In this document: piece by piece, positions 2,432 through 35,076 of the stretch | Numbering within the stretch: position 1 is the first letter of the stretch | Layout of the letters: the number at the start of each line of letters is the position of its first letter | Sequence record: OR413575.1 | Reading direction: 5' to 3' (one strand) | DNA: 64,000 nt | Made by a program: the position numbers and the translations under genes | Notes under the pieces: model-generated | What the model was told of the DNA's origin: nothing | Seen by the model: the letters and a program-made list of their open reading frames with translations, nothing else | The model's database searches: none

Positions 2432-2529
2432 AGTCACTTGTATTATCTATGAAGAGTAACGACCTTCAATCGTTGGGGAGTAACGAACCTTAGCGAGCCA
2501 TAATAGATTCCTTATAAGACATTGTCTTG

Positions 2530-2560
2530 GGCACCTTCGGGTGCCTTCTTTTTTTTTGTC
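2530..2560 (+). terminator. intrinsic terminator
   Basis: GGCACC-TTCG-GGTGCC, U-tract, GTC; the same hairpin recurs at 31177. Confidence 0.85.
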
Positions 2561-2618
2561 TGAATCGATATAACAACTATTGCGATGGCATCTTGTGTGA
2601 ATGCATAGGAGTGCTAAA

Positions 2619-3158
2619 ATGATAGAGGCAATGCTGGTAAGTGAAGCTCAGAAATCAGGGGGTGGGGGTATACCTACTACTCCTGAGGAATATTTAGATT
2701 TTATTAATCAAGCGATTTGGTTGATACCTAATGGTGGGAATATCGATAGTGCGGGGAATAGCCCTGGGGATGCTTATACTGTGGGTTACACTAACTATGC
2801 TAATCCTACTGCTACGGCTTTAAACTATGGTAGTCCATGGGGCGATGTGGCGCAGTGGGGTTTTCATGATTATCGATTGCTACAGCACTGTGCTTACGAT
2901 TTAGATACGTTCAGGGATATAGTAGCTAATATCCCGCGTGTTCTTTATTATATTGGGCCTAGACAACCTCGTAATAGTTGGAACAGTGTTACTCACAACG
3001 AATTTAAATCAACCGCGTTTAATGGGTATTCAATGGGGTTTGCTATTCTGGACTTTATATACTGGGATAGTCGTACCGGTAAAATGATGCGTAACAACCC
3101 TAGTCAACGTACTCTACCGCTTGAGTTCGATGGGGTACTGATCAAACCTTTCCGGTAG
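2619..3158 (+). CDS. putative virion/tail-associated protein (MIEAML N-terminus, Gly linker)
   Basis: AGGAG SD before ATG 2619; rich in N/Y/W; N-terminus resembles 23764-24252. Confidence 0.6.
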   Translation: MIEAMLVSEAQKSGGGGIPTTPEEYLDFINQAIWLIPNGGNIDSAGNSPGDAYTVGYTNYANPTATALNYGSPWGDVAQWGFHDYRLLQHCAYDLDTFRDIVANIPRVLYYIGPRQPRNSWNSVTHNEFKSTAFNGYSMGFAILDFIYWDSRTGKMMRNNPSQRTLPLEFDGVLIKPFR

Positions 3159-3190
3159 ATTCCTGTGTAACTTAGCACAGGAGACTACGT

Positions 3191-3850
3191 ATGTTACCAT
3201 TAAATCCCGCTATTCAATTTAAACCCCTTACCGCTGGAACATTCCGTAAGGCTGTGGGTTGTACTGAAGCTATCGCAGAAGCATGGTTCGAAGCCACTAA
3301 TGCTGCTATGGTAGAGTTCGGTATTACCAAACCGCTTGATCAGGCAATGTTCTTGGCACAGGTCGCTCATGAATCAACTGGGTTCACTGCCATGGTCGAA
3401 TCTTTCAACTACAGTAAGCAAGGGTTGAAACTAACCTTTGGACATAGGCTAACTGATGCTGAAATTGATAAATGGGGTCGTCAACCTGGTGAGAAGTCTG
3501 TTCCTATTGAACGGCAACGTCTTATTGCCAACAAGGTTTACGGTAACCGCATGGGTAATGTTCGCCCGGACGATGGCTGGAATTATCGTGGACGCGGTCC
3601 TATACAGACTACTGGTACTAATAATTATATTGCTACTGGTGATGCTCTGGGTGTGGATCTTTATACTACCCCTGACCTCATCACCAGTCCCGATGTAGGT
3701 ATTCGTTCTGCAGCTTATTTCTATGTGAGCGCAGGTTGTCTGAAGTATACTGACGATATCGTTCGTGTAACCAAACTCATCAATGGTGGGGATAATGGGT
3801 TAGATGATCGTAAGAAACGTTACGCGCTGGCTAAATCTGTGTTAGCATGA
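3191..3850 (+). CDS. glycoside hydrolase family 19 endolysin
   Basis: FLAQVAHESTGF, YRGRGPIQTTG..NY and VTKLINGG.NGLDDR motifs. Confidence 0.9.
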   Translation: MLPLNPAIQFKPLTAGTFRKAVGCTEAIAEAWFEATNAAMVEFGITKPLDQAMFLAQVAHESTGFTAMVESFNYSKQGLKLTFGHRLTDAEIDKWGRQPGEKSVPIERQRLIANKVYGNRMGNVRPDDGWNYRGRGPIQTTGTNNYIATGDALGVDLYTTPDLITSPDVGIRSAAYFYVSAGCLKYTDDIVRVTKLINGGDNGLDDRKKRYALAKSVLA

Positions 3851-3885
3851 TTAATAACGAGCTCACTGTTTCAAGATGACTCCGC

Positions 3886-3916
3886 TGGGACCTTCGGGTC
3901 CCACTTTTTTTTTGAC
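3886..3916 (+). terminator. intrinsic terminator
   Basis: TGGGACC-TTCG-GGTCCCA, T9, GAC. Confidence 0.85.
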
Positions 3917-3968
3917 TCTTGCTCCGATTAGTATGTAAACCATACATTACTTATTGACTGAGGTTATT

Positions 3969-4652
3969 ATGCAATACATTCTCTCTATGCGTCAAGGTAA
4001 CGCTTCTACTGCTGAATTTCAAACTTTCGTAGCTTCTATATTTGCAGCTGCGGCATGTCAAAAGATTCAACCGCTACATGAAGCACTTATCGCGATTGAT
4101 ACTCTGAATAAAAACATTCGCTGGGGATTACAAGAGCGCAACTCAAGCGATCTTACTATCTCTAACCAAGCGCGGCCTGTTGGTGAAGAACTACAATTCA
4201 TTATCAATATCGACTATCAGCCGTACGAACTCATTTTCGCGATGCCCGAATTCGCGGCGGGTACTAACCGTCAAATCATCGGCCACGTATTGTGTATCGA
4301 AGACGATTATCGTTTGTATAAACCGTTTGACCCGCGTATCATGCGCCGTGCCAAAGGTAGTCTTAACCGTATTTGGGGATTAGACCTCTATGCGGGTAAA
4401 GATGACCGTGGCGTCAGTATTAAACCTTTCCTTGAACGAGATACTAATGCACATGTCGAATCTCATGATCTCCAACCTTCAGTCGAAGTGCACTCAATGC
4501 ATGGGGCTGGGTACTCTATCCTCATTCACCAGCTGGTTGCTAAGGTTCGTAAGGCGCATCCTGATTATGCACTTAGTGATCTGGTCCGCGTTACTGTCGG
4601 TAATAATCCGGTACTGGTAGAAGTAGATTCTACTCACACCGAAGAAGGGTAA
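3969..4652 (+). CDS. hypothetical protein, probably late
   Basis: Preceded by ATTAGTATG; GAGG SD before ATG 3969. Confidence 0.7.
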   Translation: MQYILSMRQGNASTAEFQTFVASIFAAAACQKIQPLHEALIAIDTLNKNIRWGLQERNSSDLTISNQARPVGEELQFIINIDYQPYELIFAMPEFAAGTNRQIIGHVLCIEDDYRLYKPFDPRIMRRAKGSLNRIWGLDLYAGKDDRGVSIKPFLERDTNAHVESHDLQPSVEVHSMHGAGYSILIHQLVAKVRKAHPDYALSDLVRVTVGNNPVLVEVDSTHTEEG

Positions 4653-4697
4653 GACAACATAAACCCCCTGGCCATTTGGCCAGGGGGAATGTGCCGC
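4653..4697. terminator. bidirectional hairpin terminator without U-tracts
   Basis: CCCCCTGGCC-ATTT-GGCCAGGGGG; tails TTTATGTTGTC on - and AATGTGCCGC on +; lies between convergent genes. Confidence 0.7.
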
Positions 4698-5561
4698 TTA
4701 TGCAGACTTTTTGGCGCTGTTCATGTTCGGAACGTAGCCAGTGTAGTCGACCGCGTTAACGTCAGCTTCTGCTTTCTGAATCCAAGCAGAGCGGAAGTTA
4801 GGATCGATACCGGTTTGGTTCGCTGCGTCTAAGAAACGCTGAGCCAGTTTACGTACGCCAACACCAACCTGCTGAATACAGGTAAAGGTGATAGAGTGCG
4901 TTACTGATTCCGGAGTAGCAGTGATGTCACGACTACCTTCTACACGAGGACCTTGCATCGGCATCATGTTGGTGCAGAGCCAGGCTTCTACAACCCAACG
5001 TTCAGTCGGATCGGGTTCTACGAACAGTACAGTGAACGCCGTGTAGTCAGGATACAAACCGTAAGGAGTGTTACGACCACGGCTAACAACTGCCGGTACG
5101 TTGGTTTCCGGGTTACCCAGGAGGTTAAGGATATAACCGTTCCAGAAGTATTTAACCGGGGTACCGATTTTCTCAACCCATTCGAATTGAGGTTGGCTAC
5201 GGTTACGACGAACCTTAGCCAGAGTCTGCATCATCTCACCGCCGCCGCCGAACGGGTTCTCGGAGTATTCAACTTCCAGAGACTGGTCCAGGCCAGAGAT
5301 CGAGCGCGGGTGTAGTTCGATAAGTGCTTTGAGGCACGCAAGCCATTTTTCAGGGTTCGGTAGATCTTTGAATCCGGCCGGACCTTCCATCAGGAATGCG
5401 ATTACCGGGCGACGGGTGTAGTCAGCTGCACCGTGGTAGTAACGGATGTCAGTAACGTAACCCATCTGTCCAGAGTTGGTAAGGTCCGTTACCGGACCGT
5501 CGATACCCTCAGCGTACGCCTCATTCTGCTTGAGGATCGTGTTGGCGTCTTTCTTTGCCAT
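4698..5561 (-). CDS. tail tube protein (phiKZ gp30-like)
   Basis: 287 aa, directly downstream of the sheath; FTVLFVEPDPT..VVEAWLCTNMMP motif typical of these tubes. Confidence 0.8.
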   Translation of the reverse strand: MAKKDANTILKQNEAYAEGIDGPVTDLTNSGQMGYVTDIRYYHGAADYTRRPVIAFLMEGPAGFKDLPNPEKWLACLKALIELHPRSISGLDQSLEVEYSENPFGGGGEMMQTLAKVRRNRSQPQFEWVEKIGTPVKYFWNGYILNLLGNPETNVPAVVSRGRNTPYGLYPDYTAFTVLFVEPDPTERWVVEAWLCTNMMPMQGPRVEGSRDITATPESVTHSITFTCIQQVGVGVRKLAQRFLDAANQTGIDPNFRSAWIQKAEADVNAVDYTGYVPNMNSAKKSA

Positions 5562-5572
5562 GATAATTCCCC

Positions 5573-7657: not shown

Positions 7658-7693
7658 TATCTCCAACTAATTAGTTTAGGTCAAGACCACGTA

Positions 7694-8667: not shown

Positions 8668-8678
8668 AGGTATAAACC

Positions 8679-15196: not shown

Positions 15197-15955
15197 ATGA
15201 ATATTAAAGGTTTCCCTTTCGACTCATTTACTCCTGCTACTAATAAGTTAATGCTGGATTTAGGTATTGAACAAACGCTGATCGATTTTGCCTCTGCTAA
15301 CATTGAACGTAACGATGTAGCACATCGCCATGATCATGTTGAAGATGTAATACTGAAAGTCTTCGATTATTACGATGCTCTCTATGGTATAGCTAATACG
15401 CCGTTAGTAGTTAATGAGAAACGTCGGGCAGTTGCAGCGGCGTTATTACATGACATCGGTTGCTGGATGGATCGCGATGCTCACCACCTGATTGCATCTA
15501 ATTGGGTATTGTCATTGCGTGAAGATCAATTCAGTCAAATGTTCTACGGTATTAATCCTGACGACATTTCTGTGGTCGCAGTAGCTATCTTAGAGCATCG
15601 GGCCAGTTGGAAGTTTGCACGTAAATCAGCAGTAAGTGATATTGTTGCAGCTGCGGATCGTGGTTCCTTCTGTCCGAAGGAATATCTTCGCCGTGCTTAC
15701 TTATACGGGCGTAGTAAGTTAAAGATGCGCGGTAGTGAAGCTCTGACAAGAGCTGTAGATCATTTCATGGAAAAGTATAAAGATGGGGGATATGTATACG
15801 AAGCGATGCCTGAAATCTGTAAGCAATTCAACCAAGCCAGTATTGCGCAGATTAAAGCTGCTGCTAACAATCGTGCGTGGTGTGAAGATACTATCGCAGA
15901 TAACATGTTAGAGTGGGAAGTGACTTATGAGGAGATGACTAATGCAAGTAGCTAA
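15197..15955 (+). CDS. HD-domain phosphohydrolase
   Basis: H..H, LLHDIG, EHR and AADR motifs in order. Confidence 0.85.
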   Translation: MNIKGFPFDSFTPATNKLMLDLGIEQTLIDFASANIERNDVAHRHDHVEDVILKVFDYYDALYGIANTPLVVNEKRRAVAAALLHDIGCWMDRDAHHLIASNWVLSLREDQFSQMFYGINPDDISVVAVAILEHRASWKFARKSAVSDIVAAADRGSFCPKEYLRRAYLYGRSKLKMRGSEALTRAVDHFMEKYKDGGYVYEAMPEICKQFNQASIAQIKAAANNRAWCEDTIADNMLEWEVTYEEMTNASS

Positions 15956-16454
15956 TTTAAAGAGTAGGACGCATTCTCCTACTCGTGCTATGCCGGTACG
16001 TATCGCTAGTACGTTAGCATTTATTGAGAGCTATCGTAAATCGCGAGCGGCCGAATCTAATTTTGAACTAAAACGGGAGAACATACATGCTCATGAGTTT
16101 GCTTATTTGATCACAGATCTGCCATCTGGTAAATTCTTTGTATACGGTATCGTAAGTAAAAGGAATCCTGATAACACAGGTGTGTTAACGGAAGAAGATT
16201 TAACTGAAATTAAAGCATTGATTCCTGATGATCAGGAGTATGTTGATATCGTTCGCGGGTTCGACTTTGAAGCGGATGAAGACAACAGTGAAATAACTGT
16301 TTACCTGGGTGCTGAATGGGTATTTGCAATACTGGTGGACGAAGAGTTAGGATGTTACACGATTGAACGCAACGAATACCTGGATCGCTCTTCAGATATT
16401 TATACATTAATCAAGACTGCTGGCAAAGCATTCAGAATAGCAAGAGGCTACTGA
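15942..16454 (+). CDS. hypothetical acidic protein
   Basis: GAGGAG SD; overlaps the end of the HD gene. Confidence 0.7.
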   Translation: MQVANLKSRTHSPTRAMPVRIASTLAFIESYRKSRAAESNFELKRENIHAHEFAYLITDLPSGKFFVYGIVSKRNPDNTGVLTEEDLTEIKALIPDDQEYVDIVRGFDFEADEDNSEITVYLGAEWVFAILVDEELGCYTIERNEYLDRSSDIYTLIKTAGKAFRIARGY

Positions 16455-16527
16455 CAGCATAGCCCCCGGACCCGTTAAGGTCCGGGGGCTTAGCCAGGGG
16501 TATCTTATCCCTTATTTTTTTTTTGAC
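16453..16527. terminator. bidirectional terminator
   Basis: GCCCCCGGACC-CGTTAA-GGTCCGGGGGC; T10 then GAC downstream on +; TATGCTGTC tail on -. Confidence 0.75.
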
Positions 16528-16697
16528 TGAAGGCCGATGGTATCTAGAAGGTGATCAAGATATGAGGTATCCGCCAAGTCAAAACTCCTTTTCGCGTACC
16601 GTGTGACAAACGGTGTATGCTAGGAGCTGTCGAGCAGCGCCGCGCTCTTTGAATCCCGGATCAAGTTAATCGGAATACGCAGCGCTGTTCGTACATA
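16453..16697. ncRNA. candidate structured RNA with embedded micro-ORF
   Basis: Three consecutive stem domains; minus-strand TATG start; terminator-bounded; strand ambiguous. Confidence 0.4.
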
Positions 16698-16740
16698 AGT
16701 ATAGTAATGTTACCTAATTTTTTACGCGTTTTCATTCTGA

Positions 16741-16774
16741 CAAAAAAAAAAGGAGTGGGCGCGACCCCACTCCT
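16741..16774 (-). terminator. intrinsic terminator
   Basis: GGAGTGGG-loop-CCCACTCC, T10 and GTC on the minus strand. Confidence 0.85.
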
Positions 16775-16923
16775 GCGTCTGAGGAAACAATGTCCATGGT
16801 AGACAGTTAACCGGACTGTGTCCATATTGGTGAATGTTACACCGGTGATAGATTTGCGCTCTTTAACACTTAAGGTGCGACACGCTCAGTTAACATACTA
16901 AGTGTATAAAAACGTTACGCAAC

Positions 16924-18144
16924 TTACCCTGTTGGACCCATCGCGGTGTAATAACTCATCGTCATTGCTCGAAGTACTAGATACAGGATGACAGACGTCC
17001 TTTCACCTGATACCGGGTACGGGCTTGGTTTGCCGATAGCGCGTCGGACTAACTTATCGCCTTCGTTACGTAAGAACATAACTTCGCTACTAGACCCACG
17101 ACTTGAGTTAATCGCACCTTTAATCACCAACATGCACTCAGACAAGTTGTTAGCATTGATCCCTTTATCAACAATCAGTTGGAACGAAAAGTCGAGAGTA
17201 CGTTTAACGAGCTCGTGGACTTTACGCTCGGTGGGTTTGTTGTAGATCGAGGAGAGATATAATAGGGTGTCCTGGAAGTAGCCAGCGTTCCCTGAAGGGT
17301 TTGACTCAGCGACAATGTCAACAAGGTTTTGACGAACAAATGATGCACCTTCACCTATAATTCCTTCTAAGTAGCGACGATACTGCGACTCATTACGTTT
17401 TAAGTCACGTACGCCTACCTCACCTTCCATCTCCATTAACGAGGATGTTACAGAGATACCTGCGCCTTCTGAACGAACGATGTAATAAAGTTCGGTAGCG
17501 TTCTTAATAGTAGAACGGGCACGAGTCTGTGAATCGCTTAGGATATAAGCAATGTCATCGTCATCGTTATAGCGAATAAAGGTTTGGATATGAATTGATT
17601 GTTTAGCGATCATATTCTGGGATTTCACTTCGCAAAGTGTATACCAGTTACGATGTACTCGGAGATCGTATTTATAATTCATTGATTCGTACGTACGTTG
17701 GGCTAACTGAACATTTACGCCGAATCTGAAAAAATGGTTTAAGATAGAGGACAAGAACTTATACTGCAACAGACTGAGAAGTTTGACTGCAACGTCCTCT
17801 TTCTGTTTCTGCGGTAAAGAACTTACCAATGTCTTATGTACCAGGAAAGTAATAGCTAAGTTAAATGCGTTACTTGCCACCTTATGCTCAGGGTTAACTG
17901 ATCCATCTTGGTAGAGCGCCTGTTGAAGTTCAGATTCATCTGCTGACATAATGTCAGTGAAGAACCGCGCGGTGTCGGACGGGAGCCATTTTATCTCTGT
18001 ACTTAGTAACCCGTTACCAAAGAACTTGATGTGTTCCGGGCTACGGCTTACATAGTTGTTTGCGAAACTGAGTACTGCCTTGGCAAAACGTCCGTCAATC
18101 TTCAATCCGGCACATTGGGATTCAAATACTGATTTGATTGACAT
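16924..18144 (-). CDS. conserved chimallivirus virion protein (phiKZ gp32 position)
   Basis: About 406 aa, helical, ending VILYLVLRAMT; GGAG SD; lone minus-strand gene near the tail block. Confidence 0.6.
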   Translation of the reverse strand: MSIKSVFESQCAGLKIDGRFAKAVLSFANNYVSRSPEHIKFFGNGLLSTEIKWLPSDTARFFTDIMSADESELQQALYQDGSVNPEHKVASNAFNLAITFLVHKTLVSSLPQKQKEDVAVKLLSLLQYKFLSSILNHFFRFGVNVQLAQRTYESMNYKYDLRVHRNWYTLCEVKSQNMIAKQSIHIQTFIRYNDDDDIAYILSDSQTRARSTIKNATELYYIVRSEGAGISVTSSLMEMEGEVGVRDLKRNESQYRRYLEGIIGEGASFVRQNLVDIVAESNPSGNAGYFQDTLLYLSSIYNKPTERKVHELVKRTLDFSFQLIVDKGINANNLSECMLVIKGAINSSRGSSSEVMFLRNEGDKLVRRAIGKPSPYPVSGERTSVILYLVLRAMTMSYYTAMGPTG

Positions 18145-18200
18145 GATAGACTCCAAATAGGGGTTACACAGGATTCCAGTATTTCTAAGGTATCCTTGAA

Positions 18201-18219
18201 TATATATTACTTAAGTGAA
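18201..18219 (+). promoter_or_regulatory. early-type phage promoter
   Basis: TATATATTAC-TTA-AGTGAA. Confidence 0.75.
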
Positions 18220-18241
18220 GAAGTTAATTAAGGAGTTTGAG

Positions 18242-18877
18242 ATGAGTTTAATTACTAAAGGCTCTATAATTGGAGTTGCGCCGCGACTTCGTTTGGAAGC
18301 CAAGTTACAATCACTGAAGTGGAATAAAGAGCCAGAAGAACTGGTAGCGTTCTTCCGTAACTTGAAATCGTTCCTTTATAAGAATGAAGTAGGGCACGGG
18401 GGTTATGAAACTTACGTCACAACGTTTACTATCGGTGATGTTGAATTTTGTCGTTTTGCGCTGAAACAAAAAAGTAACCCTAAGTTTGTCCCTACAATGG
18501 AAGCCTTCATTGCACCGGATGGTCGTATTTATTTCCATGGTGTATTCACTGCTATCGGTCCGCGTGACGATGAGGTTGACAAACACATCGGCGAATACGT
18601 GGTGAACTACATCTGTAAACAATTCGATGATCCTAGCGAACATATCGCTATTGTCCTACATCGTCGTTGGAAGTTAACTGAAGACGATAAAACAGCGAAG
18701 TATGATTTTATCGAATGGGGCGATGAAGAGTTAACTAAGTTGGCTCATGTATTGATCGTAGAGCAGCAGAAGATTGCTAAGGCGGCATTTGCGCATTGGC
18801 GTGAACGTGTTAAACACCTTGAGCAAGTAAAAGAAGCTGTTAAAGATAAACCTGAAAAGGGTATCCACATTGATTGA
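18242..18877 (+). CDS. hypothetical early protein
   Basis: AAGGAG SD before ATG 18242; the GTG at 18215 lies inside the promoter. Confidence 0.7.
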   Translation: MSLITKGSIIGVAPRLRLEAKLQSLKWNKEPEELVAFFRNLKSFLYKNEVGHGGYETYVTTFTIGDVEFCRFALKQKSNPKFVPTMEAFIAPDGRIYFHGVFTAIGPRDDEVDKHIGEYVVNYICKQFDDPSEHIAIVLHRRWKLTEDDKTAKYDFIEWGDEELTKLAHVLIVEQQKIAKAAFAHWRERVKHLEQVKEAVKDKPEKGIHID

Positions 18878-18880
18878 CGG

Positions 18881-18908
18881 CTAGGGACTTCGGTCCCTAG
18901 TCTTTTTT
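18881..18908 (+). terminator. intrinsic terminator
   Basis: CTAGGGAC-TTCG-GTCCCTAG plus U-tract. Confidence 0.85.
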
Positions 18909-18998
18909 GATGTTTAACTCTTCTACTTGTGTTGGGCACCGGAACGTAGTTCCGTTGTGCTGTAATTGTGACTATGCATTAACTGAGGATATTGAAAT

Positions 18999-20492
18999 AT
19001 GATTAATTTAGTATTAGAGATTACACGTAGACCCGAAAATATCAACAAAGAAATTCGCGTAATGGGAGTAAACATTCCGTTACAAGAACTTTACGTAATT
19101 GGGAATAATAACAACAGGGCGATGATTAGTTGTAAATTTCATCGTAGTCATTTAGGCCGTGTCCTGGAATTGATTAAACAGAATGAGGCTATCATTTCAC
19201 TGGACAAGGAAGACATCGGTATGCGTGATGTATACGATGGCCATATTCTTCCGCAAGATGGCGAGGGGATGCGATTAAGTGAAATCACTAGCGCATTGGA
19301 TGGATACGAAGATCTGATGAAATGGGTAAATCGTTATCAGAGACGCGAGATTCAGGATATTGTTGAGTATACTTGGATCAACGACCAGTGTTCCTCTTTA
19401 TCTGAACACCTGAAGAAAGTAGATTTAGATCTCCCTAACTCCGGTGTAGCTGTAACTATTCAACGGCCAGCAGCTGAAGAAATAGAAAAGGTTTATGCTG
19501 ATATGGAGCCCGCACCTAAGAAGCCGGTGATGGATACATCACGATTCAGGATTGAAACTCCAGCTTTTATTAAGCGTATGTTAAGACAGGATGCTAAAGA
19601 ATCAAGGATCAAAAAGAACCTTGTGTCCGCTGCATTACGAGGGACTATAAGTACTTTCCGTGGAACATCTTTGTACGAGAAGTACAAAATGATGTTAGAG
19701 AACGGAATCCAGGCTGGGATTGTATCCTCTATGGACGCGTTTGAACTTGACTATCATATCGATATACTAATCGCTAATCCGAAATACTCGGTGCCGTGTG
19801 CGGTTAAAGGTAGAAAAGTCAAGCGTATTGAGGATGTATTTGTCCTTGACTCTTTAGAGATGGAGAAAACCGATCTTGGTTCGTGTCCTGGTGTTGTGTT
19901 ACCTGAGCATTGCGGTATTTATAATCCTACCATGGATCATTCCAATACTAAGAAGTTACCGGTTGGATTAGGGAATGGGCTCTTGTACAAGTGCGACGTG
20001 CAGTTAGGTGATGTTTCTCAGTTAGCCGTAGAAGAGCCTGTAAAGAACACAGAGCCGTTTACAGTTGTCGTGTACGACACTTGGTTTAGTGGATCTACGG
20101 AGCGTCTACAGATGATCGCTGACGGTATACGGACACGATTGGTTAAAGGTGACGGTTTTCTCTATACTAGCTCGGAAGATCCAAAAAATGCTAAGTCTCT
20201 TGACCCATCACTCATCGCCGGAAAGATGACTAATTTTCGTGTAATGAAAGATATTACAGGAAATGGTATTATTACTGCGACGCTGACTCTTCTCGATACA
20301 CCGTATGGTATTAATCTACGGACTATGATGGAGAACGGTACAAGAGTTGACTTTACGCCTGTTTGGTATTGGAAACTAAAAGACGGTGTTCAAACTGTTG
20401 AAGATGTTTATTACATCAAATACGGTCTTGAGCTACGTAACCGCATGGCGATTGATGAGTTCTGTAAGAAAGAAGGATTAATCATATCGTAA
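18999..20492 (+). CDS. 497-aa protein with a C-terminal, apparently inactive prohead-protease-like domain
   Basis: ITATLTLLDTPYGINLRTMMENG resembles the T4-gp21-type KILDTPMGKI..LL..G segment; catalytic His and Ser positions substituted. Confidence 0.5.
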   Translation: MINLVLEITRRPENINKEIRVMGVNIPLQELYVIGNNNNRAMISCKFHRSHLGRVLELIKQNEAIISLDKEDIGMRDVYDGHILPQDGEGMRLSEITSALDGYEDLMKWVNRYQRREIQDIVEYTWINDQCSSLSEHLKKVDLDLPNSGVAVTIQRPAAEEIEKVYADMEPAPKKPVMDTSRFRIETPAFIKRMLRQDAKESRIKKNLVSAALRGTISTFRGTSLYEKYKMMLENGIQAGIVSSMDAFELDYHIDILIANPKYSVPCAVKGRKVKRIEDVFVLDSLEMEKTDLGSCPGVVLPEHCGIYNPTMDHSNTKKLPVGLGNGLLYKCDVQLGDVSQLAVEEPVKNTEPFTVVVYDTWFSGSTERLQMIADGIRTRLVKGDGFLYTSSEDPKNAKSLDPSLIAGKMTNFRVMKDITGNGIITATLTLLDTPYGINLRTMMENGTRVDFTPVWYWKLKDGVQTVEDVYYIKYGLELRNRMAIDEFCKKEGLIIS

Positions 20493-20502
20493 CGACACAA
20501 TT

Positions 20503-20537
20503 GGAGAACCCTTCGGGGTTCTCTCTTTTTTTTTTGC
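20503..20537 (+). terminator. intrinsic terminator
   Basis: GAGAACCC-TTCG-GGGTTCTC plus U-tract. Confidence 0.85.
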
Positions 20538-20572
20538 CTGATTTCCATAATCGTTTCTAACCATATTTCAGT

Positions 20573-20590
20573 TATATATTACTTTAGTGA
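20573..20590 (+). promoter_or_regulatory. early-type phage promoter
   Basis: TATATATTAC-TTT-AGTGA. Confidence 0.75.
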
Positions 20591-20627
20591 TAGAACGTTC
20601 TATCTTTTATAATAAGGAATATTCCAA

Positions 20628-21008
20628 ATGTATAATGCAATCGCACGCCGCCGTTCTGTTTCTTTCGGTCAAGGTTCTTCCAAAGTTGTTCCAATGCTGA
20701 TGGAAGGTAACGGTAACGTCAAACACCTGCACAACGCAACAACTCCTACTACTTGGGCAGTAGCTGGAGAAGGTATCCAGATTCGTTACGGGAAAGATCT
20801 CGTAGGGAATATCTGGGTCACTGTGAATGTCCGTGGTAATGAACTGTTCCAGTGGGTTGGGGAATCAACTACAACTTGGTTCAATGCAATGGTAGATTGC
20901 CTCGTACACGATCCGTTGGTTCTGGCACTGCAGCGTCGTTCCGCTACAGACCATTATTCGCTGATGGATAAAATCGAAGCGATCGGTTCACAGGTAACTG
21001 TCCATTAA
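20628..21008 (+). CDS. hypothetical early protein (paralog trio member 1)
   Basis: AAGGA SD; contains IQIRYG..IWV..RGNE.F.W.G. Confidence 0.7.
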   Translation: MYNAIARRRSVSFGQGSSKVVPMLMEGNGNVKHLHNATTPTTWAVAGEGIQIRYGKDLVGNIWVTVNVRGNELFQWVGESTTTWFNAMVDCLVHDPLVLALQRRSATDHYSLMDKIEAIGSQVTVH

Positions 21009-21014
21009 TGCCCA

Positions 21015-21039
21015 GGGGACTTCGGTCCCCTATTCTTTA
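21015..21039 (+). terminator. intrinsic terminator (weak U-tract)
   Basis: GGGGAC-TTCG-GTCCCC-TATTCTTTT. Confidence 0.7.
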
Positions 21040-21063
21040 CCAGTAAGCTAGAGGATCTAGAGC

Positions 21064-21402
21064 ATGTTAAACGTAACTACTACCCGAATTGATAATAACC
21101 AATCTAATGTCATTACGACGGATTATCTCCGTCACATTTGGAGTTATGAAGAAGACGTTACATTCGAAGCCCATAATCGTTGGATTGAATTAGAATACGG
21201 CGTTTTCAATAACCGTATTTATGCCGAAATCAAACAAGGTAATCAAGACTTCACTTGGGCAGGGGTAAGAGATGCGGATTGGGTTAAGAAGTTTTTAATT
21301 GATTACGAGGAGGAGTTAGAGTTAGCTGGCGAACATAAGTTAGTTATACAGGCGCACTTGCGTCAACTGAAAGGTTTCATGAAACAAATTACAAACATTT
21401 AA
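21064..21402 (+). CDS. hypothetical protein (paralog trio member 2)
   Basis: GAGGA SD; contains IELEYG..IYA..QGNQ.F.W.G. Confidence 0.7.
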   Translation: MLNVTTTRIDNNQSNVITTDYLRHIWSYEEDVTFEAHNRWIELEYGVFNNRIYAEIKQGNQDFTWAGVRDADWVKKFLIDYEEELELAGEHKLVIQAHLRQLKGFMKQITNI

Positions 21403-21425
21403 CTAGTTTACTAGAGGATTACAAT

Positions 21426-21830
21426 ATGTTTTTTAAGACTAAAGCTGGGATGAATGGTGCTGCAAGAATCGTTCTGAATACTTTCGAAGAAGTGGTAGAA
21501 GATTATAAAACTTTTTTACTTACTGGCTCTATGATTGACTTTCAAGAGTATGTTGAATCAGAAGCAACTTATTTGTACAATATGATTCAACGTACGGTAT
21601 TCGTTGATACTCTTAACTTACATTTTGGTGTATTAGGCGAAATGGAGAAGTTAGGTAGGGGCGAAGAAGGTTACATACGTCTTAATTATGGTACTACAGA
21701 TACCGGCATCGAATTTCAAGCTGATATTTCAGTTGATGGCAACAGTAAAGAGATAATTTTAGAAGTATATCACATGCACGCTGCTTTACAGGGCGTAGTT
21801 TTAAACACACCAATGTCTGATCGTAAATAA
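21426..21830 (+). CDS. hypothetical protein (possible trio member 3)
   Basis: GAGGA SD; contains IRLNYG...IEF..V.GN. Confidence 0.65.
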   Translation: MFFKTKAGMNGAARIVLNTFEEVVEDYKTFLLTGSMIDFQEYVESEATYLYNMIQRTVFVDTLNLHFGVLGEMEKLGRGEEGYIRLNYGTTDTGIEFQADISVDGNSKEIILEVYHMHAALQGVVLNTPMSDRK

Positions 21831-21842
21831 GAGGAACTAAAC

Positions 21843-22451
21843 ATGAACGTATCTAACGTAATCGCAATCAACGAAGAAATGACCACTGCATACGGTATCC
21901 TGGGTAAAGATCTGGTATCTGAGTTAGTTCGTTACGCCGCTGCCGTAGGATTCACTGAAGACCATGAGATCCTCCTGCCAGCACCTTACCACTACCAGCT
22001 GCGTGGCATGGTAATCTCTCCACGCACCACAGCAGCTGATGAAGATCACATCGTCTCTGCAATCTGGGGCGAAGATGATCGCGTTGTATTCGTTGTAGAG
22101 AAAATCAAACGCTGCACCTGCGGCGGTCATCGTGTTGATGGCTCTGCACTGGTGGAAGAGGTTAAGCAATCTCTCGATGCACTGACCACCGCTTTACCTA
22201 ACCTGAAGGTAGAGCTGCTGTATGTAGTTAACGGTGTTGACTTCGCATACTCCGCAGATGGTAACAATACTCTGCTGGACGCAATCGAAGCTAACTACCG
22301 CGTAGCTCAGATGGATGATCTGCCACAACTGCTGAACGACGCAGACCGCGGCGAAGGTCTTATCGATCCTGAGTGGATTCACGATGTCGTATCCGCGTAC
22401 AAAGAAGATCCAGAAGAAGCAGTTAAGATCTTCGGCGAAATCTTTAAATAA
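21843..22451 (+). CDS. acidic hypothetical protein with CxCxxH motif
   Basis: GAGGA SD; high-expression codon bias; RCTCGGHR. Confidence 0.7.
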   Translation: MNVSNVIAINEEMTTAYGILGKDLVSELVRYAAAVGFTEDHEILLPAPYHYQLRGMVISPRTTAADEDHIVSAIWGEDDRVVFVVEKIKRCTCGGHRVDGSALVEEVKQSLDALTTALPNLKVELLYVVNGVDFAYSADGNNTLLDAIEANYRVAQMDDLPQLLNDADRGEGLIDPEWIHDVVSAYKEDPEEAVKIFGEIFK

Positions 22452-22770: not shown

Positions 22771-22986
22771 TTAAGTAAAAAATAAAGTAGTATCTATTAT
22801 TATGCGGTATTGAAGTCTGACACGGTCAATACCCCGTGGTCCTTTCCAGTCCCTGGAAAGCTGAGTGAAATTGAATGAAGTGAACGTAGTGAACGGAATG
22901 AGATCCTAGTAGTTGACCTTGACCTTAGGGGGTGGGGGTCTGTGACTGACAAAATCAAATTAACTAATTAATTAGGAGAGTATGTC

Positions 22987-23190
22987 ATGTTAGCGTGGCT
23001 GAAGAAATTATTACGTAACCCAGTTGTGACAGATCGTTGTACCATGACACATCTGAGCACTGAATTAATTATTCTGGAACAAGAACTAGAAGAACATGGT
23101 ATATCAATAGACTGTGATCTATTGGAAGAGATGGAGATACTCCGTCGTCGTATTGAAGAGTTCCGTAATACGAATTTATTAAACTGCTAA
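22987..23190 (+). CDS. small hypothetical protein
   Basis: AGGAG SD; follows a long structured leader. Confidence 0.65.
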   Translation: MLAWLKKLLRNPVVTDRCTMTHLSTELIILEQELEEHGISIDCDLLEEMEILRRRIEEFRNTNLLNC

Positions 23191-30442: not shown

Positions 30443-30532
30443 GATAGTTAACTATAAAGGAATCTTAGTTAATTCCCCAACTTCGGTTGGGGGCATCCGA
30501 CACTTACTATCCCAAACACGATAGAGGTAGTT

Positions 30533-31165
30533 ATGACATCGTTTATTTTACCTCCCCGCTATTTGGGAGTTAACCAGATCGAAATCCGCCCAGTGGAGTT
30601 AAGTGCTTTAATAGAGAAGCCATTAAACTTTATCAGACCGCCGGTCGATGGGTTCCGAGTTACAGACCTGACTAAGTTCGGTCGCTGGACTCCGTTTCGA
30701 CTGACCATCAACGGACAATCCCATATCGTATTACTGGACAAGTCGTTCAGTGATAATCGTAAGGCCCTGGACTACTACATCACCGTTTTGCAACGTTGCG
30801 TTAGCTTGGTGTGTAATAGTACAGATAACAATCCGGCTAAATATCGGTTAGAGATTGAAGATGGACTGTTAATTGACGGCGCACCTCGCCGACCTCAGTT
30901 AATGGAATTCTCTACGTTCTGCGATCTATTGAACGCAACTCTGACTTACAACCGGGACAAGTTCCGTATCGTAATTGGTTTGTTACATTCCTTCGGTACG
31001 AAACTACAGGCCTCTATCGAATATCAAGTTATGAAGGAGTTCCCTCGTCTTTCAAAAAATAGTCCGGAGACTCATTCTTTGAAGAACAAACCGTTTGATG
31101 GCAAAGCTCCCCCGCGTACAGCCATGGCGGACGCGTTTAGTAAAGCGCGTACGGATGAATCGTAA
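30533..31165 (+). CDS. hypothetical protein
   Basis: GAGGT SD. Confidence 0.7.
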   Translation: MTSFILPPRYLGVNQIEIRPVELSALIEKPLNFIRPPVDGFRVTDLTKFGRWTPFRLTINGQSHIVLLDKSFSDNRKALDYYITVLQRCVSLVCNSTDNNPAKYRLEIEDGLLIDGAPRRPQLMEFSTFCDLLNATLTYNRDKFRIVIGLLHSFGTKLQASIEYQVMKEFPRLSKNSPETHSLKNKPFDGKAPPRTAMADAFSKARTDES

Positions 31166-31176
31166 TGGTATTCATA

Positions 31177-31202
31177 GGCACCTTCGGGTGCCTTCTTTTT
31201 TT
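31177..31202 (+). terminator. intrinsic terminator
   Basis: GGCACC-TTCG-GGTGCC-TTCTTTTTT, identical to 2530. Confidence 0.85.
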
Positions 31203-31219
31203 GTTTAAAAGGAGGCGTT

Positions 31220-31792
31220 ATGAACGTCGAAAAGGAACTGTGTATTTTTGCACATATCCCCGTATTCACGGTCGGCCGTTTGAACAGCTACCCGTATCAG
31301 GTAATGGTCCAAGGTGACCTAAACACAACAACGCCAGAAGGTCTGCGTGTAACTAACCGCGTACGCCGGACGGAGGATAACGGTAAAGTAGTTTATACTA
31401 CAGCCACTAAGTTTCGTTTACCTCGCGTCGAAGGTTCTGTTAATACCAACGCACCTCAAGTCGAGTTCACTATCGACGAAGAAGATTTCAAAACAGTAAT
31501 GGGAGCATGTACTCAGCGTTATGTAAAACGCCGTTATACTGTTCCGTTACCGTCAGGTGTAAAGGTAGAGTTTGACCGATACCTTGAATCCGAAATGCCT
31601 TACGAGTTCAGTCGCATTGTTAAGATTGATATCGAAGGCGGAGATGAAGCTCAGATTGATGTTTATTTGGCAGAGCTTCGTCAGTTAGGTTTCCACGTTG
31701 GCGAAATTATAAATCCGCCGGGCGTAGAATCACCAGCTATAAAAGAAGCCATCGATGAACTGATGGGGTCGCGCTGGAACCTTGTTAATTAA
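31220..31792 (+). CDS. CYTH / triphosphate-tunnel-fold protein
   Basis: N-terminal VEKEL (ExE-like), RVR, K.R.YT, EFD.Y and IDIE in CYTH order. Confidence 0.55.
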   Translation: MNVEKELCIFAHIPVFTVGRLNSYPYQVMVQGDLNTTTPEGLRVTNRVRRTEDNGKVVYTTATKFRLPRVEGSVNTNAPQVEFTIDEEDFKTVMGACTQRYVKRRYTVPLPSGVKVEFDRYLESEMPYEFSRIVKIDIEGGDEAQIDVYLAELRQLGFHVGEIINPPGVESPAIKEAIDELMGSRWNLVN

Positions 31793-31833
31793 CAGACTCA
31801 AGTTTATAGAGTCGCTCATTTGGAGTTAGTATC

Positions 31834-32352
31834 ATGGACTCGCTGGTTTGCCCGTGCTGTAAACAGGATCGTCCTGAGAATGAAGTCATTCTTATTGATG
31901 ATGAACGTAATTTGTGGCAATGTAAAATCTGCATTATGCTGAATAAACAGCCATCTAAAGGAACACCTTGTTCGCGTGCAGAATATGAAGCACGTCGTAA
32001 GTTAGGAGCTGGAATGGTAATGCGCACTACAGCTACCGTTAAGACTACGGGTAAGGTTGTTACCGATTTCAAAGATTGTCCTGGGTGTTTGAAGAAACTA
32101 CCGAAAGGTGCTTTCTTGGGCAAAGGCCTCCGTGAGTTCAGATACTGCCTTACATGCAGAGACGAACAAATAGCTGTTGATTCTGAACGCGCTAAAAAAC
32201 TATTAGGCGGCGGGATCTTCAGTAGTATGAAGAAAATCGTAGCTCGCTGCCATTTGTGCGGCTGGATAGGCGATGTAGGATCGTTCAGCGTTGATACCGA
32301 ATCCCCCACCGGTATTAAACACCGCTGTCCTGAGGGGTGTAAAGGGAAGTGA
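31834..32352 (+). CDS. multi zinc-ribbon protein
   Basis: CPCC..CKIC, CPGC..CLTC, CHLC..CPEGC. Confidence 0.65.
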   Translation: MDSLVCPCCKQDRPENEVILIDDERNLWQCKICIMLNKQPSKGTPCSRAEYEARRKLGAGMVMRTTATVKTTGKVVTDFKDCPGCLKKLPKGAFLGKGLREFRYCLTCRDEQIAVDSERAKKLLGGGIFSSMKKIVARCHLCGWIGDVGSFSVDTESPTGIKHRCPEGCKGK

Positions 32353-32358
32353 CGTACT

Positions 32359-32793
32359 ATGGAACTTCATCTGGTAATTATCGACGGTCGCTTCGATCGC
32401 ATCGATTTATCCAGGGATGGAGTCCTTCTGTTTACGATTACAAGATACCAATCCAGAGGATTAGGTTTAGTTGCTTGTGTCAACGGTAGATTAGAATATC
32501 TTTATATCTACCGCCATAAAGCCGCTGTGCGTCAGGAAGTAAGATTCCGTTATGGCTTGGACGTCATATCCTCTCAGTTACGTAAACAAGGAAAGGAATT
32601 CAAAGGACTGTTCTGGGGCTCCCCAGTAGCGACAGATTATTTAAATGATCGCTGGTTCGGAGTAGGTAATACATTGTTAATGAGTCGTAATGGTAGATTA
32701 TCAGATCCATTGGAAAATGTACTGGTACGCAACCGATATTACGATATCGACACTGAACCATTGTTACAACATATTCGTACTTGGTTACAGTGA
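32359..32793 (+). CDS. hypothetical protein
   Basis: 144-aa ORF ending at a terminator. Confidence 0.65.
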   Translation: MELHLVIIDGRFDRIDLSRDGVLLFTITRYQSRGLGLVACVNGRLEYLYIYRHKAAVRQEVRFRYGLDVISSQLRKQGKEFKGLFWGSPVATDYLNDRWFGVGNTLLMSRNGRLSDPLENVLVRNRYYDIDTEPLLQHIRTWLQ

Positions 32794-32838
32794 CAGCACA
32801 AAAGCCTCCCCCGAAGGGAGGCTTCTTTTTTTTTTGTC
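32792..32838. terminator. bidirectional terminator
   Basis: AAGCCTCCC-loop-GGGAGGCTT; U-tract and GTC on +; TTTTGTGCTGTC on -. Confidence 0.85.
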
Positions 32839-33675
32839 TTATCTCGATTGACCTGCAATCAGGCCCCTGAGGAAAGTAGAATGGGCTGCTTTGTCATTCA
32901 TCCTGTTAACTGCCTGAATCTCATCCCTTAAGAAATCCGTGTAATTATCGTAAGCATCGGAATATCCTTCGATAATACCTTCAATCTTCGACAACTCAGC
33001 GCCGCCGTATAAATACCCAGAATCCAGATCAATAACGGTATTGTTATAGATCCACGCTTTGGCAGCGAACACCGCCAGTTGCGCTAATTGGAATACAGCG
33101 GGACCATTAAACGAACTCAGTTCATCATCCTGACCTAAACGACAGGTTAGGGAACCCTGTTGGATTTTACCCATGTAGTCGTTGATTACAACCGTGTTCT
33201 CAGCAATAAGTTCTACGGAAGCTGATCCGTTAATCGGAGCGGGACTTGCTGCACGCAATACTTGCTGTGCCTGCTGCATTAAAGGACTGTTACCACAGTT
33301 TTGAATATTACCAGCCGACATCTGCCAACCGTTGTTCAAATCTGCTGCAACTGTATTGTACCAGTAGTTAAAAGCAATTACTTGTGAGATACGTCTGCCC
33401 TTAGTCTTGGACTTAGGGATCCGCATAACGGTACGATAATCTTGGTTTTCCAAGAATTGTATCTCAGCGCCAGATAAAGGAATATTGACTGTCTCAGCAC
33501 CGAGGATGTCTAAGTCCTCAACAATCTGATCGGTGATTACGTGTTTACGAATCTCCCAATCAAGCCCTCCCGCGTATTTGTGGTTTCGGCCCATTCGCTT
33601 CAAGAAGGCCACTTCTAATACTGGCTTAGGTATAGCTCTCTTGATTTCATGGACGAGTTTATCTACAACAGACAT
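32839..33675 (-). CDS. conserved chimallivirus protein divergent from phuZ
   Basis: 278 aa; GGAGG SD; position typical of the core genome; function unknown to me. Confidence 0.65.
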   Translation of the reverse strand: MSVVDKLVHEIKRAIPKPVLEVAFLKRMGRNHKYAGGLDWEIRKHVITDQIVEDLDILGAETVNIPLSGAEIQFLENQDYRTVMRIPKSKTKGRRISQVIAFNYWYNTVAADLNNGWQMSAGNIQNCGNSPLMQQAQQVLRAASPAPINGSASVELIAENTVVINDYMGKIQQGSLTCRLGQDDELSSFNGPAVFQLAQLAVFAAKAWIYNNTVIDLDSGYLYGGAELSKIEGIIEGYSDAYDNYTDFLRDEIQAVNRMNDKAAHSTFLRGLIAGQSR

Positions 33676-33780
33676 ATACCCTCCAGCATGATGTAGTGTG
33701 TAAGAATATTTTTTGAGGCACTACCTGCTTGTTATGTACGAGTAGTGTTACATACGTTTACACCATATAAGAGGTTTATA

Positions 33781-34716
33781 ATGGAAACTAAGAATAAGGT
33801 TCGTATTTATGGCTGCGGCGGTTCCGGTACTAATATCCTGAACCTTCTGATGAAGCAGGATACCAGCAACCTTGCTGCGTTTGATCCTGTATTCGTCGAC
33901 AGCTCCGATTCCAACATTGCCGCTGGTTCCAATGTGTACCGTATTAACGGCATGAACGGTGCAGGTAAAGATCGTGAAGTCATGATGGGCCCTGCACGCC
34001 GTGAAGCAACTAACATCCTGGTTCAGCACGAACCATCGGAAGTTAACATTCTCATCTCTTCTGGCGGCGGTGCTACCGGCGCTGTAGTCGCGACTACTCT
34101 GGCCGAAGAAATCTGGGCTCAGGGCAAACGCGTCATCTTCTTCGTTGTGGGTTCTAATGAATCCCTGAAGACTGCGGAGAACACCTCTAAACATCTGCGT
34201 ACGCTGAACGGCGTCGCTCGCCAGCATGGTCACGTCTCTGTTGTCTTCTACGACAACAACGGCGACAATACCCGTCGTACTGAGGTTGATCGTTCTATGG
34301 TTCAAGGTCTGCTCGCATTCCTGGATCTGTACAGCGGCAACCACGATGAGCTGGACACCAAAGATGTTGAGAACTGGTTGTTCCTGGAAAAATCAGCTCA
34401 GCTGGAACCACAACTGGTGCTGATGGATATCGACACTTCTCGCGAAAATGCACTGGAGCGTCAGTATCCGATCTCTGTGGCAATCATCCACAGTAAAGCC
34501 GATGCCGGTAAAGGGACTATCCCTGCCGACTATACTACCGAAGGTTATCGCCGCGACAATAACGACACCTCGCTCTTCTTCTCCATCCATACGGAAGGTC
34601 TGAACAACATCATGACGGAACTTACCGACGTGATCGGCGGGTTCAAGAAAAGAGCAGTAGCGCGTCAAGCGACAGCTAACCAGGTATTCGGCGGTGGAAC
34701 TGGCTGGGATTTATAA
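33781..34716 (+). CDS. phuZ: phage tubulin PhuZ
   Basis: GCGGSGTNI, VDSS, GAGKDR and tubulin signature GGGATG; GAGGT SD before ATG 33781. Confidence 0.92.
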   Translation: METKNKVRIYGCGGSGTNILNLLMKQDTSNLAAFDPVFVDSSDSNIAAGSNVYRINGMNGAGKDREVMMGPARREATNILVQHEPSEVNILISSGGGATGAVVATTLAEEIWAQGKRVIFFVVGSNESLKTAENTSKHLRTLNGVARQHGHVSVVFYDNNGDNTRRTEVDRSMVQGLLAFLDLYSGNHDELDTKDVENWLFLEKSAQLEPQLVLMDIDTSRENALERQYPISVAIIHSKADAGKGTIPADYTTEGYRRDNNDTSLFFSIHTEGLNNIMTELTDVIGGFKKRAVARQATANQVFGGGTGWDL

Positions 34717-34814
34717 TGCCTAGCTTTCCATTTGCTCTGGGCAAGAAAGCAATTGCGCGGTTAAACCCTAAGACACTGGCGATCTTACGCCGCCGTTTTA
34801 AGGCGAAACGATAA
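34716..34814 (+). CDS. 32-aa cationic peptide coupled to phuZ
   Basis: TAATG overlap; MPSFPFALGKKAIARLNPKTLAILRRRFKAKR has 10 K/R and no D/E. Confidence 0.5.
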   Translation: MPSFPFALGKKAIARLNPKTLAILRRRFKAKR

Positions 34815-34826
34815 AAGCTCTTTATA

Positions 34827-35076
34827 TATGAGCGAATATCACCGCCATTGTTGCTAGCTCACTACAATCTGAAACCTAAATCACTCTCTTAAGTGAGAGT
34901 TAATGGAACACTGGTTTAAATGTACCAGAGGACGAAAAGCCTCTGTGGGAAAGGCAGCGATGATCGCAGCAGAAGAACCACAAGCGAATGGTAGTCTAGC
35001 TTAGCAAGAAAGGGTTGCTCCCTGATCAGCAAGCGTACCCCGGCCCCGGACTCCGTGGGCTGGGCATTATGCTGTC
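34827..35076 (+). ncRNA. candidate structured RNA downstream of phuZ
   Basis: TATG at 34827; long-range closing helix with several internal hairpins; terminal hairpin plus ATTATGCTGTC. Confidence 0.4.

Follow-up and report, generated by a model that had tools for sequence, protein, structure and literature searches.

What occupies the long unannotated gaps between the genes of Salmonella phage SPLA10? We addressed this question in the last 64 kb of its genome (positions 146,198-210,197 of record OR413575.1, 210,197 bp), hereafter the window, in whose numbering coordinates are given unless stated otherwise. Among its annotated products are chimallin ("nuclear shell protein"), PhuZ, and several split RNA-polymerase subunits, which makes SPLA10 a nucleus-forming jumbo phage. 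A previous reading of the bare letters (the sequence-only reading) had proposed that five intervals of the window make up a late small-RNA layer. These intervals lie in four gaps, which are the longest without annotation in the first 36 kb (2432-2618, 16455-16923, 22771-22986, and 34815-35139), and the gap 16455-16923 contains two of them, units 4 and 5. Our analysis supports part of that proposal. The five intervals are probably conserved non-coding RNA elements, neither genes nor neutral spacer. The evidence points to selected elements of which units 1, 3, 4, and 5 behave as stand-alone units, while unit 2, without a terminator, is leader-like. The five units, with the evidence on which each prediction is based, are:

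2451-2558, plus strand: unit 1, a predicted stand-alone small RNA of about 108 nucleotides (nt) (TATG at 2448-2451, conservation, terminator).
22804-22986, plus strand: unit 2, a conserved leader of about 180 nt into the gene for a 67-amino-acid (67-aa) protein at 22987 (conservation from the predicted +1).
34830-35076, plus strand: unit 3, a structured RNA of about 250 nt behind phuZ and a 32-aa gene (conservation, folding z score of -2.6, compensatory pairs).
16453-16694, minus strand: unit 4, a predicted RNA of about 240 nt (z score of -4.6, compensatory pairs, promoter block).
16741-16894, minus strand: unit 5, a predicted small RNA of about 150 nt (start motif, spacing, linker, and terminator kept).

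Relatives for comparison were taken from public assemblies. Searches of GenBank phage DNA with the two largest gaps (16455-16923 and 34717-35139) returned SPLA10 itself only, and scans of IMG/VR with PhuZ returned nothing, or only relatives about 30% identical. The closest GenBank relative of SPLA10 is Serratia phage PCH45, which has the same gene order and a PhuZ that is 55% identical. The assemblies yielded contigs 97-99% identical to SPLA10, an 82.8-kb contig with 88% identity to SPLA10 in the 406-aa marker protein (the 88% relative), and further, PCH45-like contigs at 73-78%. Additional chimallin homologues (P0022-P0028) were located on contigs of up to 215 kb. Units 1-4 were thereby compared across essentially two diverged lineages.

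The RNA bodies of units 1, 2, 4, and 5 are 95%, 91%, 78%, and 80% identical to those of the 88% relative, and the 5' half of unit 3 is 85% identical; units 1, 2, and 3 are conserved from the TATG, or from just before it, onwards. Between the same two phages, codon positions 1, 2, and 3 are 85%, 90.5%, and 58% identical, so that conservation of the units greatly exceeds that of neutral sites. Mismatches in the units fall on the three phases without codon periodicity (3/3/0, 8/5/2, 22/20/9, 24/13/14, and 11/12/8 for units 1 to 5), in contrast to the 15/10/97 of phuZ. As a positive control we used an annotated 345-nt "gap" at 37303-37647, where the phases are 47/12/8; by this pattern the stretch is protein-coding, either a missed gene or a gene extension in the paralogue array after phuZ. 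The intervals had been described as poor in open reading frames (ORFs), and this was confirmed, with no conserved ORF and no three-nucleotide substitution periodicity in them. A test for small protein genes, based on conservation of frame, start, and length and on third-position changes, recognized 37303-37647 and the 32-aa gene at 34716-34814 and recognized none of the micro-ORFs. We rejected the small ORFs inside the units as genes and regard them as incidental: the 14-aa ORF of unit 1 is frameshifted in the 88% relative, the 21-aa ORF of unit 4 is there cut to 5 aa, and the others lack a Shine-Dalgarno (SD) sequence. The idea of gated micro-ORFs falls with them. Two ORFs had been said to have their SD inside a stem. 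For the 21-aa ORF at 16577-16512 this is true, its GGAG being part of helix P2 in unit 4; a second SD-preceded ORF was not found.

When folding was compared with dinucleotide shuffles, the z scores were -4.6 for unit 4, -2.6 for unit 3, -2.5 for unit 5 with its terminator, -1.6 for unit 1, and -0.5 for unit 2. The term "stem-rich" is thus appropriate for units 4, 3, and 5, which exceed their shuffles, and not for units 1 and 2. The G.U pairs of units 1 and 4 fit the proposed strands. These alignments show purifying selection on the five intervals, no coding signal, covariation of stems, and conservation of position.

The five TATG sites had been placed correctly, at 2448-2451, 22801-22804, and 34827-34830 on the plus strand and at 16697-16694 and 16897-16894 on the minus strand, and an A/T-rich stretch precedes each of them. 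The warning that 4 nt make a weak signal was also justified, since TATG alone is not enriched in the upstream gaps of SPLA10 (56 occurrences, 70.5 expected from composition) and has no evidential value by itself. Longer forms are enriched in intergenic DNA, TATGT(A/C/T) 3.0-fold and TATGTA 3.6-fold, and among the units the enriched form is found only in unit 4 (TATGTA) and unit 5 (TATGTT). From a reading of all SPLA10 upstream regions two promoter classes emerge. The early motif, TATATATTAC followed about 3 nt on by TAGTGAAG, precedes at least 17 genes including that of chimallin; the late-type motif, TATGT(A/T/C), is located 22-80 nt before structural genes. In phage phiKZ the late promoter, which is used by the non-virion RNA polymerase, is T(-3)ATG(+1) with little else conserved (PMC7598289). 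All four of these bases are present at all five starts, in a motif too short to be diagnostic. Units 1 and 2 have in common the exact 12-mer AAAAAATAAAGT (2424-2435 and 22778-22789), which is centred about 21 nt upstream of the G and spans 15-27 nt upstream of the predicted +1; in the 88% relative it stands before unit 1 only. The 12-mer resembles, and may correspond to, a weak A/T-rich element that phiKZ middle promoters have at -24. We infer from these motifs that the five units start, at the predicted positions, in the manner used by the phiKZ-type non-virion RNA polymerase, and that their timing is "late".

Four of the intervals had been said to end at a terminator. This applies to units 1 and 5, which end at a classical hairpin with a T-run (2529-2546 on the plus strand and 16774-16751 on the minus strand); the ends of units 2, 3, and 4 are not classical. 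A terminator search of unit 2 found none; in units 3 and 4 a GC hairpin with ATGCTGTC behind it forms the predicted end. The pattern (G/A)TGCTGTC has 10 intergenic sites in SPLA10, a 6.9-fold excess, and each time it stands directly behind a GC hairpin, often on the reverse, U-less side of a bidirectional terminator. In the window it was found as follows:

980; 16460 (minus strand); 32799 (minus strand); 35069; 57588 (minus strand): sites of (G/A)TGCTGTC behind a GC hairpin.

A hairpin with GTGCTGTC or ATGCTGTC may represent a second, U-poor type of end signal, possibly a stop specific to the phage polymerase or a processing signal.

Unit 1 is predicted to consist of two hairpins, a single-stranded AUUCCUUAU stretch, a small hairpin, and the intrinsic terminator. 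Its helix 2 is kept by two G.U to G-C changes, and four G.U pairs are valid on the plus strand only. The alignment with the 88% relative ends after the terminator, where the next gene is also different, and PCH45 lacks unit 1. In unit 2, two local hairpins are accompanied by a run of UGAA/GUGAA repeats and a pairing of CU-rich with G-rich sequence. It is 91% identical in the 88% relative from the predicted +1 onwards, while the 30 nt upstream do not align; the promoter region is replaced there, and another TATGT stands 11 nt upstream of the conserved block. Among nine relatives at 97-99% identity, unit 2 has one substitution and one 8-nt indel. Because it lacks a terminator it reads as a conserved leader, and because of its UGAA/GUGAA repeats it is perhaps protein-binding.

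Unit 3 has a conserved 5' half (34827-34975; identity 0.85 to the 88% relative), a variable middle (0.63), and a GC hairpin (35039-35064; 0.88), after which come ATGCTGTC at 35069-35076 and, behind the unit, the early promoter of the next gene. Compensatory pairs considered reliable are at alignment columns 61/76, 92/101, and 237/241, one of them in the terminal hairpin. In PCH45 and in another phage of this group, the L019 phage, the order behind phuZ is a small ORF, TATGTAGA, a stretch of 235-275 nt, then a classical terminator and the next gene's early promoter. In both, the 5' end of unit 3 is recognizably homologous to that of SPLA10, and 13 of 41 predicted pairs are compensatory between the two. 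Immediately upstream of unit 3 in SPLA10 is one neighbouring gene:

34716-34814, plus strand: gene for a 32-aa basic micro-protein, overlapping the phuZ stop, annotated in the record and with third-position changes.

Since its changes relative to the 88% relative concentrate at third positions and the peptide is conserved, the pattern of substitution identifies it as a real coding gene, not a part of the RNAs. The small ORF after phuZ in PCH45 and the L019 phage, contained in the gap at L007 38459-38655 (PCH45) and L048 706-902 (L019 phage), is unannotated, is preceded by an SD, varies at third positions, and matches the 32-aa gene in position.

In unit 4 a core of three hairpins (16520-16694) is followed by an A-run, a GC hairpin, and ATGCTGTC at 16460-16453. 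The promoter, ACATTACTATACTTATG, combines the early-promoter core with TATG, and its 26-nt block is identical in the 88% relative, where the flanks differ. The fold has a z score of -4.6 compared with -2.9 on the antisense strand. Among 75 predicted pairs 7 are compensatory, including three consecutive ones, and six G.U pairs are valid on the minus strand only. Unit 4 is found only in SPLA10 and the 88% relative, as an insertion of about 250 nt between two terminators which in PCH45-like phages stand back to back.

Unit 5 starts with TATGTT, 27 nt past the stop codon of the core gene for the 406-aa protein, followed by a 5' hairpin domain, a CU-rich single-stranded linker (16775-16806), and a terminator stem (16751-16774) with a T-run. 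It was found in 7 of the 7 phages examined, down to PCH45, each time with TATGT 3-27 nt past the 406-aa stop, an RNA of about 105-140 nt, a UUUCC-containing stretch, and a terminator. Across these seven phages the body sequence changes and the start motif, spacing, UUUCC linker, and terminator stay. Among 98% relatives unit 5 is invariant, and the adjacent 25 nt (16913-16937, the last codons of the 406-aa gene) carry 9 changes. Four of the five PCH45-like versions form a long hairpin from the first nucleotides, with ACGGGCA in the apical loop and unrelated stem sequences; these folds are from single sequences, as MAFFT/RNAalifold misaligned the hairpin. In the next clade out, Moabitevirus, there is a 47-nt gap at this position and unit 5 is absent. 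We also considered unit 5 as a member of Rfam family RF00519 (suhB/mmgR), and this was ruled out: the match at 16736-16811 scores 28.8 bits, below the gathering score of 41, and is mostly terminator; we suspect that it is due to the CU-rich stretch and the terminator hairpin.

Under the reading that we prefer, units 1, 3, 4, and 5 would be short stand-alone transcription units of 110-250 nt, each transcribed from its TATG by the non-virion RNA polymerase and ending at a classical terminator (units 1 and 5) or at a GC hairpin with ATGCTGTC (units 3 and 4), and unit 2 would be the conserved 5' leader of the 67-aa gene at 22987. Their RNAs would act as base-pairing or protein-binding regulators in the middle or late phase. 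Several points weigh against this. Units 1-3 start at TATGA or TATGC; the hairpin with ATGCTGTC is a candidate transcription terminator, and the 3' ends of units 3 and 4 are inferred from it; unit 2 has almost no covariation, a fold z score of -0.5, and no terminator. Covariation was counted on structures predicted from the same alignments and in few lineages, and is supportive, not conclusive. Read contigs covering 15950-21949 include two true metatranscriptomes, whose few low-depth contigs lie elsewhere and none on 16455-16923. At most a hint comes from a 166-nt contig that lies exactly on the unit-4 core (16515-16680) and is the deepest piece of a library labelled RNA-Seq but probably DNA.

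A rival reading takes the intervals as ordinary gene punctuation, with the TATG sites, hairpins, and terminators as the promoters, 3' untranslated regions (UTRs), and terminators of the flanking genes, working as DNA signals or long UTRs. Unit 5 would then belong to the 406-aa gene as its 3' UTR, the phuZ operon would end in unit 3, and unit 2 would serve as a leader. Units 5 and 3 do each directly follow a gene of the same strand, unit 2 lacks a terminator, and in SPLA10 conservation by itself says little, all intergenic gaps being well conserved (0.75-0.98 identity). Against punctuation, the distance from stop codon to terminator in SPLA10 is typically 5-20 nt, as opposed to 100-250 nt in the units, and 110-250 nt are conserved with compensatory stem changes and strand-specific G.U pairs. 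Moreover, unit 1 is kept though the downstream gene differs between phages, and unit 4, flanked by a terminator on either side, has a conserved promoter block of its own. We therefore consider punctuation unlikely as an explanation of the set. The version put forward in the sequence-only reading, in which RNA stems gate the ribosome-binding sites of translated micro-ORFs as part of an RNA system tied to export from the phage nucleus, is far less probable still. It has in its favour that the 21-aa ORF has its GGAG in one stem and its start codon in the next, and that nucleus-forming phages need mRNA export and possess an RNA-binding protein, ChmC, which a transposon-sequencing (Tn-seq) study of PCH45 lists as an essential core gene. 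That study reports genes only (bioRxiv 10.64898/2025.12.19.695335). Against this, the 21-aa ORF is 5 codons long in the relative, the ORF of unit 1 is frameshifted, no other ORF has an SD, codon periodicity is lacking, and nothing in the sequence bears on export or connects the RNAs to it, which leaves both the "export-related" role and the link to ChmC unsupported.

If unit 5 is a regulatory RNA, its single-stranded linker may indicate what it acts on. Before any scoring, the linker was fixed as the 26 nt that precede the terminator stem; it was then compared with all 219 translation initiation regions of SPLA10. Chimallin came first, with -24.4 kcal/mol against -20.6 for the next, and was then the pre-specified target in the other phages. 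The two regions proposed to pair are:

16778-16804, minus strand: proposed seed of unit 5, complementary to the chimallin start region.
43549-43581, plus strand: proposed target, the chimallin translation initiation region (start codon at 43567), top-ranked by duplex energy in SPLA10.

Chimallin was ranked among the initiation regions of each phage by duplex energy and by a local-alignment metric that takes the whole RNA body and is independent of the window chosen for the seed:

SPLA10: duplex energy 1/219; local alignment 2 (tie)/219.
PCH45: duplex energy 1/225; local alignment 1/224.
88% relative: duplex energy 1/72; local alignment 14/72.
L019 phage: duplex energy 4/50; local alignment 1/50.

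None of the composition-matched linker shuffles attained the observed energy at chimallin (0/300 in SPLA10 and 0/300 in PCH45). With shuffled linkers the chimallin site had a median rank of 85-115, and it is therefore not generally "sticky". The pairing in SPLA10 joins UCCUCAGA (16785-16778) to the SD and CCAUGG (16799-16794) to the start codon with matching spacing, and a further block, GUCUAC, pairs with chimallin codons 4-5. In PCH45 there are 19 pairs in 21 ungapped positions from the SD through the AUG, as read from the sequences, and a gapped alignment covers the same stretch. The L019 phage has 14 of 16 positions paired on the SD and spacer and 11 perfect pairs on codons 5-8. The blocks are co-linear with SD, start codon, and codons 4-8, and the bases used differ between phages. 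These alignments show complementarity of the unit-5 linker to the ribosome-binding site and start codon of chimallin in four phages. The antisense strand of the unit-5 gene also resembles a shortened copy of the chimallin 5' end, and unit 5 looks like an antisense copy of that end which tracked its target. In the 5' UTR of chimallin itself, a palindrome around AAAGCGCTTT just upstream of the SD is conserved in all four of these phages (43522-43548 in SPLA10).

In the mechanism suggested by these pairings, the CU-rich linker of unit 5 would cover the early chimallin mRNA at its SD and start codon and keep ribosomes off, so that less shell protein would be made once late transcription starts. 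In phiKZ an 11-mer antisense oligomer on the chmA SD suffices to abolish ChmA synthesis (PMC12571901). Given this silencing, the early promoter of chimallin, and the late-type start of the RNA, a shutdown of chimallin by unit 5 is biologically plausible. A literature search found no description of an RNA that targets the chimallin start region.

How far this proposal can be carried depends on whether the match could have arisen by chance. Unit 5 could be a real conserved small RNA or 3' UTR whose CU-rich linker happens to fit a strong, purine-rich ribosome-binding site, its true partner being, for example, a host mRNA or a protein. We hold this to be quite possible, if short of an even chance. 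Margins over the next-best phage gene are thin (-21.3 versus -20.7 in energy, 29 versus 28 in alignment score), and the match depends on how the seed window is cut and its rank on the metric: with sliding windows of 5 nt another gene (start at 50126) outscores chimallin in SPLA10, and by alignment chimallin is only 14/72 in the 88% relative. A duplex scan of the whole genome, with every window and with loops allowed, gave many equal or better duplexes, among which chimallin is unexceptional. A search for phage targets of units 1-4 found nothing beyond shuffles. Furthermore, SPLA10 and the 88% relative are not independent, and all four phages are related. Chance, on the other hand, does not readily explain why chimallin is first by duplex energy in SPLA10, the 88% relative, and PCH45 and first by alignment in the L019 phage (fourth of 50 there by energy), why this holds although linker and target sequences have both diverged, why 300 shuffles in each of two phages fail to reach the observed energy, or why the blocks are co-linear and include a second one inside codons 4-8. 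On this comparative evidence, the odds that the pairing is under selection are roughly even or somewhat below. The full proposal, that unit 5 is a trans-acting antisense RNA from a late promoter which acts on the chimallin SD and start codon, shuts shell synthesis, and has co-evolved with its target across the SPLA10/PCH45 clade, is tentative, and we would put it somewhat below an even bet.

Searches for known RNAs and for repeats gave the following. Rfam 15 gave no match at or above the gathering threshold in the whole window, permissive Rfam scans of units 3, 4, and 5 gave sub-threshold matches only, and a tRNA search of the window found none; the RNA bodies thus belong to no curated RNA family (Rfam 15) and qualify neither as tRNA nor as tmRNA. 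Short-word BLAST of the RNAs against the genome returned chance-length matches only. An all-against-all comparison of the SPLA10 intergenic gaps found shared terminators and early promoters only, and no repeated RNA body. Additional unannotated gaps, 270-579 nt long, are present in the SPLA10 record at 41506-41842, 43049-43318, 84468-84846, 135126-135594, and 139227-139805 (record numbering), and others in the window at 51796-52148 and 60171-60509; the gaps of 270-579 nt could be further RNA units or missed genes. Two observations concern the record itself. Its first 71 nt are repeated exactly near its end (63887-63957 in the window), by terminal redundancy or assembly overlap, and the 497-aa gene at 18999-20492 is called as 68 aa plus 418 aa in some 98% relatives (contigs L008/L011) and is thus split or frameshifted there.

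To our knowledge almost nothing is known about post-transcriptional control in nucleus-forming jumbo phages, and we know of no target or function for any of the small RNAs catalogued in phiKZ and 201phi2-1. The present analysis adds, from a separate clade with enterobacterial hosts, five comparatively validated non-coding elements, of which units 3 and 5 are clade-wide and conserved to PCH45, for which a genetic system and Tn-seq data exist. The comparative validation, the second type of 3'-end signal, and the hypothesis of an RNA targeting chimallin are what this work contributes, and the idea that gated micro-ORFs are hidden in the SPLA10 gaps is corrected. If the hypothesis is true, unit 5 would time the synthesis of the shell protein and would be the first natural RNA regulator of phage-nucleus formation.

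As a phenomenon such small RNAs are already known, and the SPLA10 unit sequences match no curated family. The term "undescribed" used in the sequence-only reading is accordingly too strong: short promoter-to-terminator RNAs have been reported in phiKZ (PMC10914365) and in 201phi2-1 (PMC11512511). The phiKZ set consists of 17 short non-coding RNA (ncRNA) candidates derived from 5' UTRs plus intergenic ones, of which northern blots confirmed two examples (71 nt and 141 nt) and the re-annotated 3'UTR_PHIKZ298 (PMC10914365). For 201phi2-1, 11 small RNAs (sRNAs) are listed (PMC11512511). The phiKZ short ncRNAs (Putzeys et al. 2024, PMC10914365) likewise come from a nucleus-forming phage with two phage RNA polymerases; like the SPLA10 units they are shorter than 250 nt, begin at a phage-polymerase start with a terminator close behind, contain no SD-preceded ORF, and are kept in close relatives. 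They differ in having no sequence or Rfam relationship to the units, and they were seen in Oxford Nanopore (ONT)-cappable-seq reads and some by northern blot, whereas the SPLA10 units are predicted only; units 3 and 4 differ further in their non-classical end, the hairpin with ATGCTGTC. By the definition used for short ncRNAs in these phages, start and stop signals less than 250 nt apart and no SD-preceded ORF of at least 10 aa (PMC10914365 / PMC11512511), units 1 and 5 clearly belong to the class, units 3 and 4 belong to it if the hairpin with ATGCTGTC terminates, and unit 2, with no stop signal, does not; unit 4 holds one SD-preceded ORF, the non-conserved one of 21 aa. A closer parallel to units 3 and 5 in the SPLA10/PCH45 clade is sRNA005 of 201phi2-1 with its counterparts in phiKZ, EL, and PA3 (PMC11512511), which is positionally conserved beside a core gene across chimallivirus genera; it is found at another locus, upstream of a tail gene, and no target has been proposed for it.

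The action proposed for unit 5 has precedents of a different kind. OOP of phage lambda and sar of P22 are base-pairing antisense regulators that occlude a ribosome-binding site. Unit 5 differs from such regulators in that it is encoded 26.6 kb from its proposed target, so that it would act in trans, and in that its pairing is imperfect and interrupted. Like OOP, sar, and the anti-chmA oligomer (PMC12571901), it would be short and complementary to its target message at the SD and start codon.

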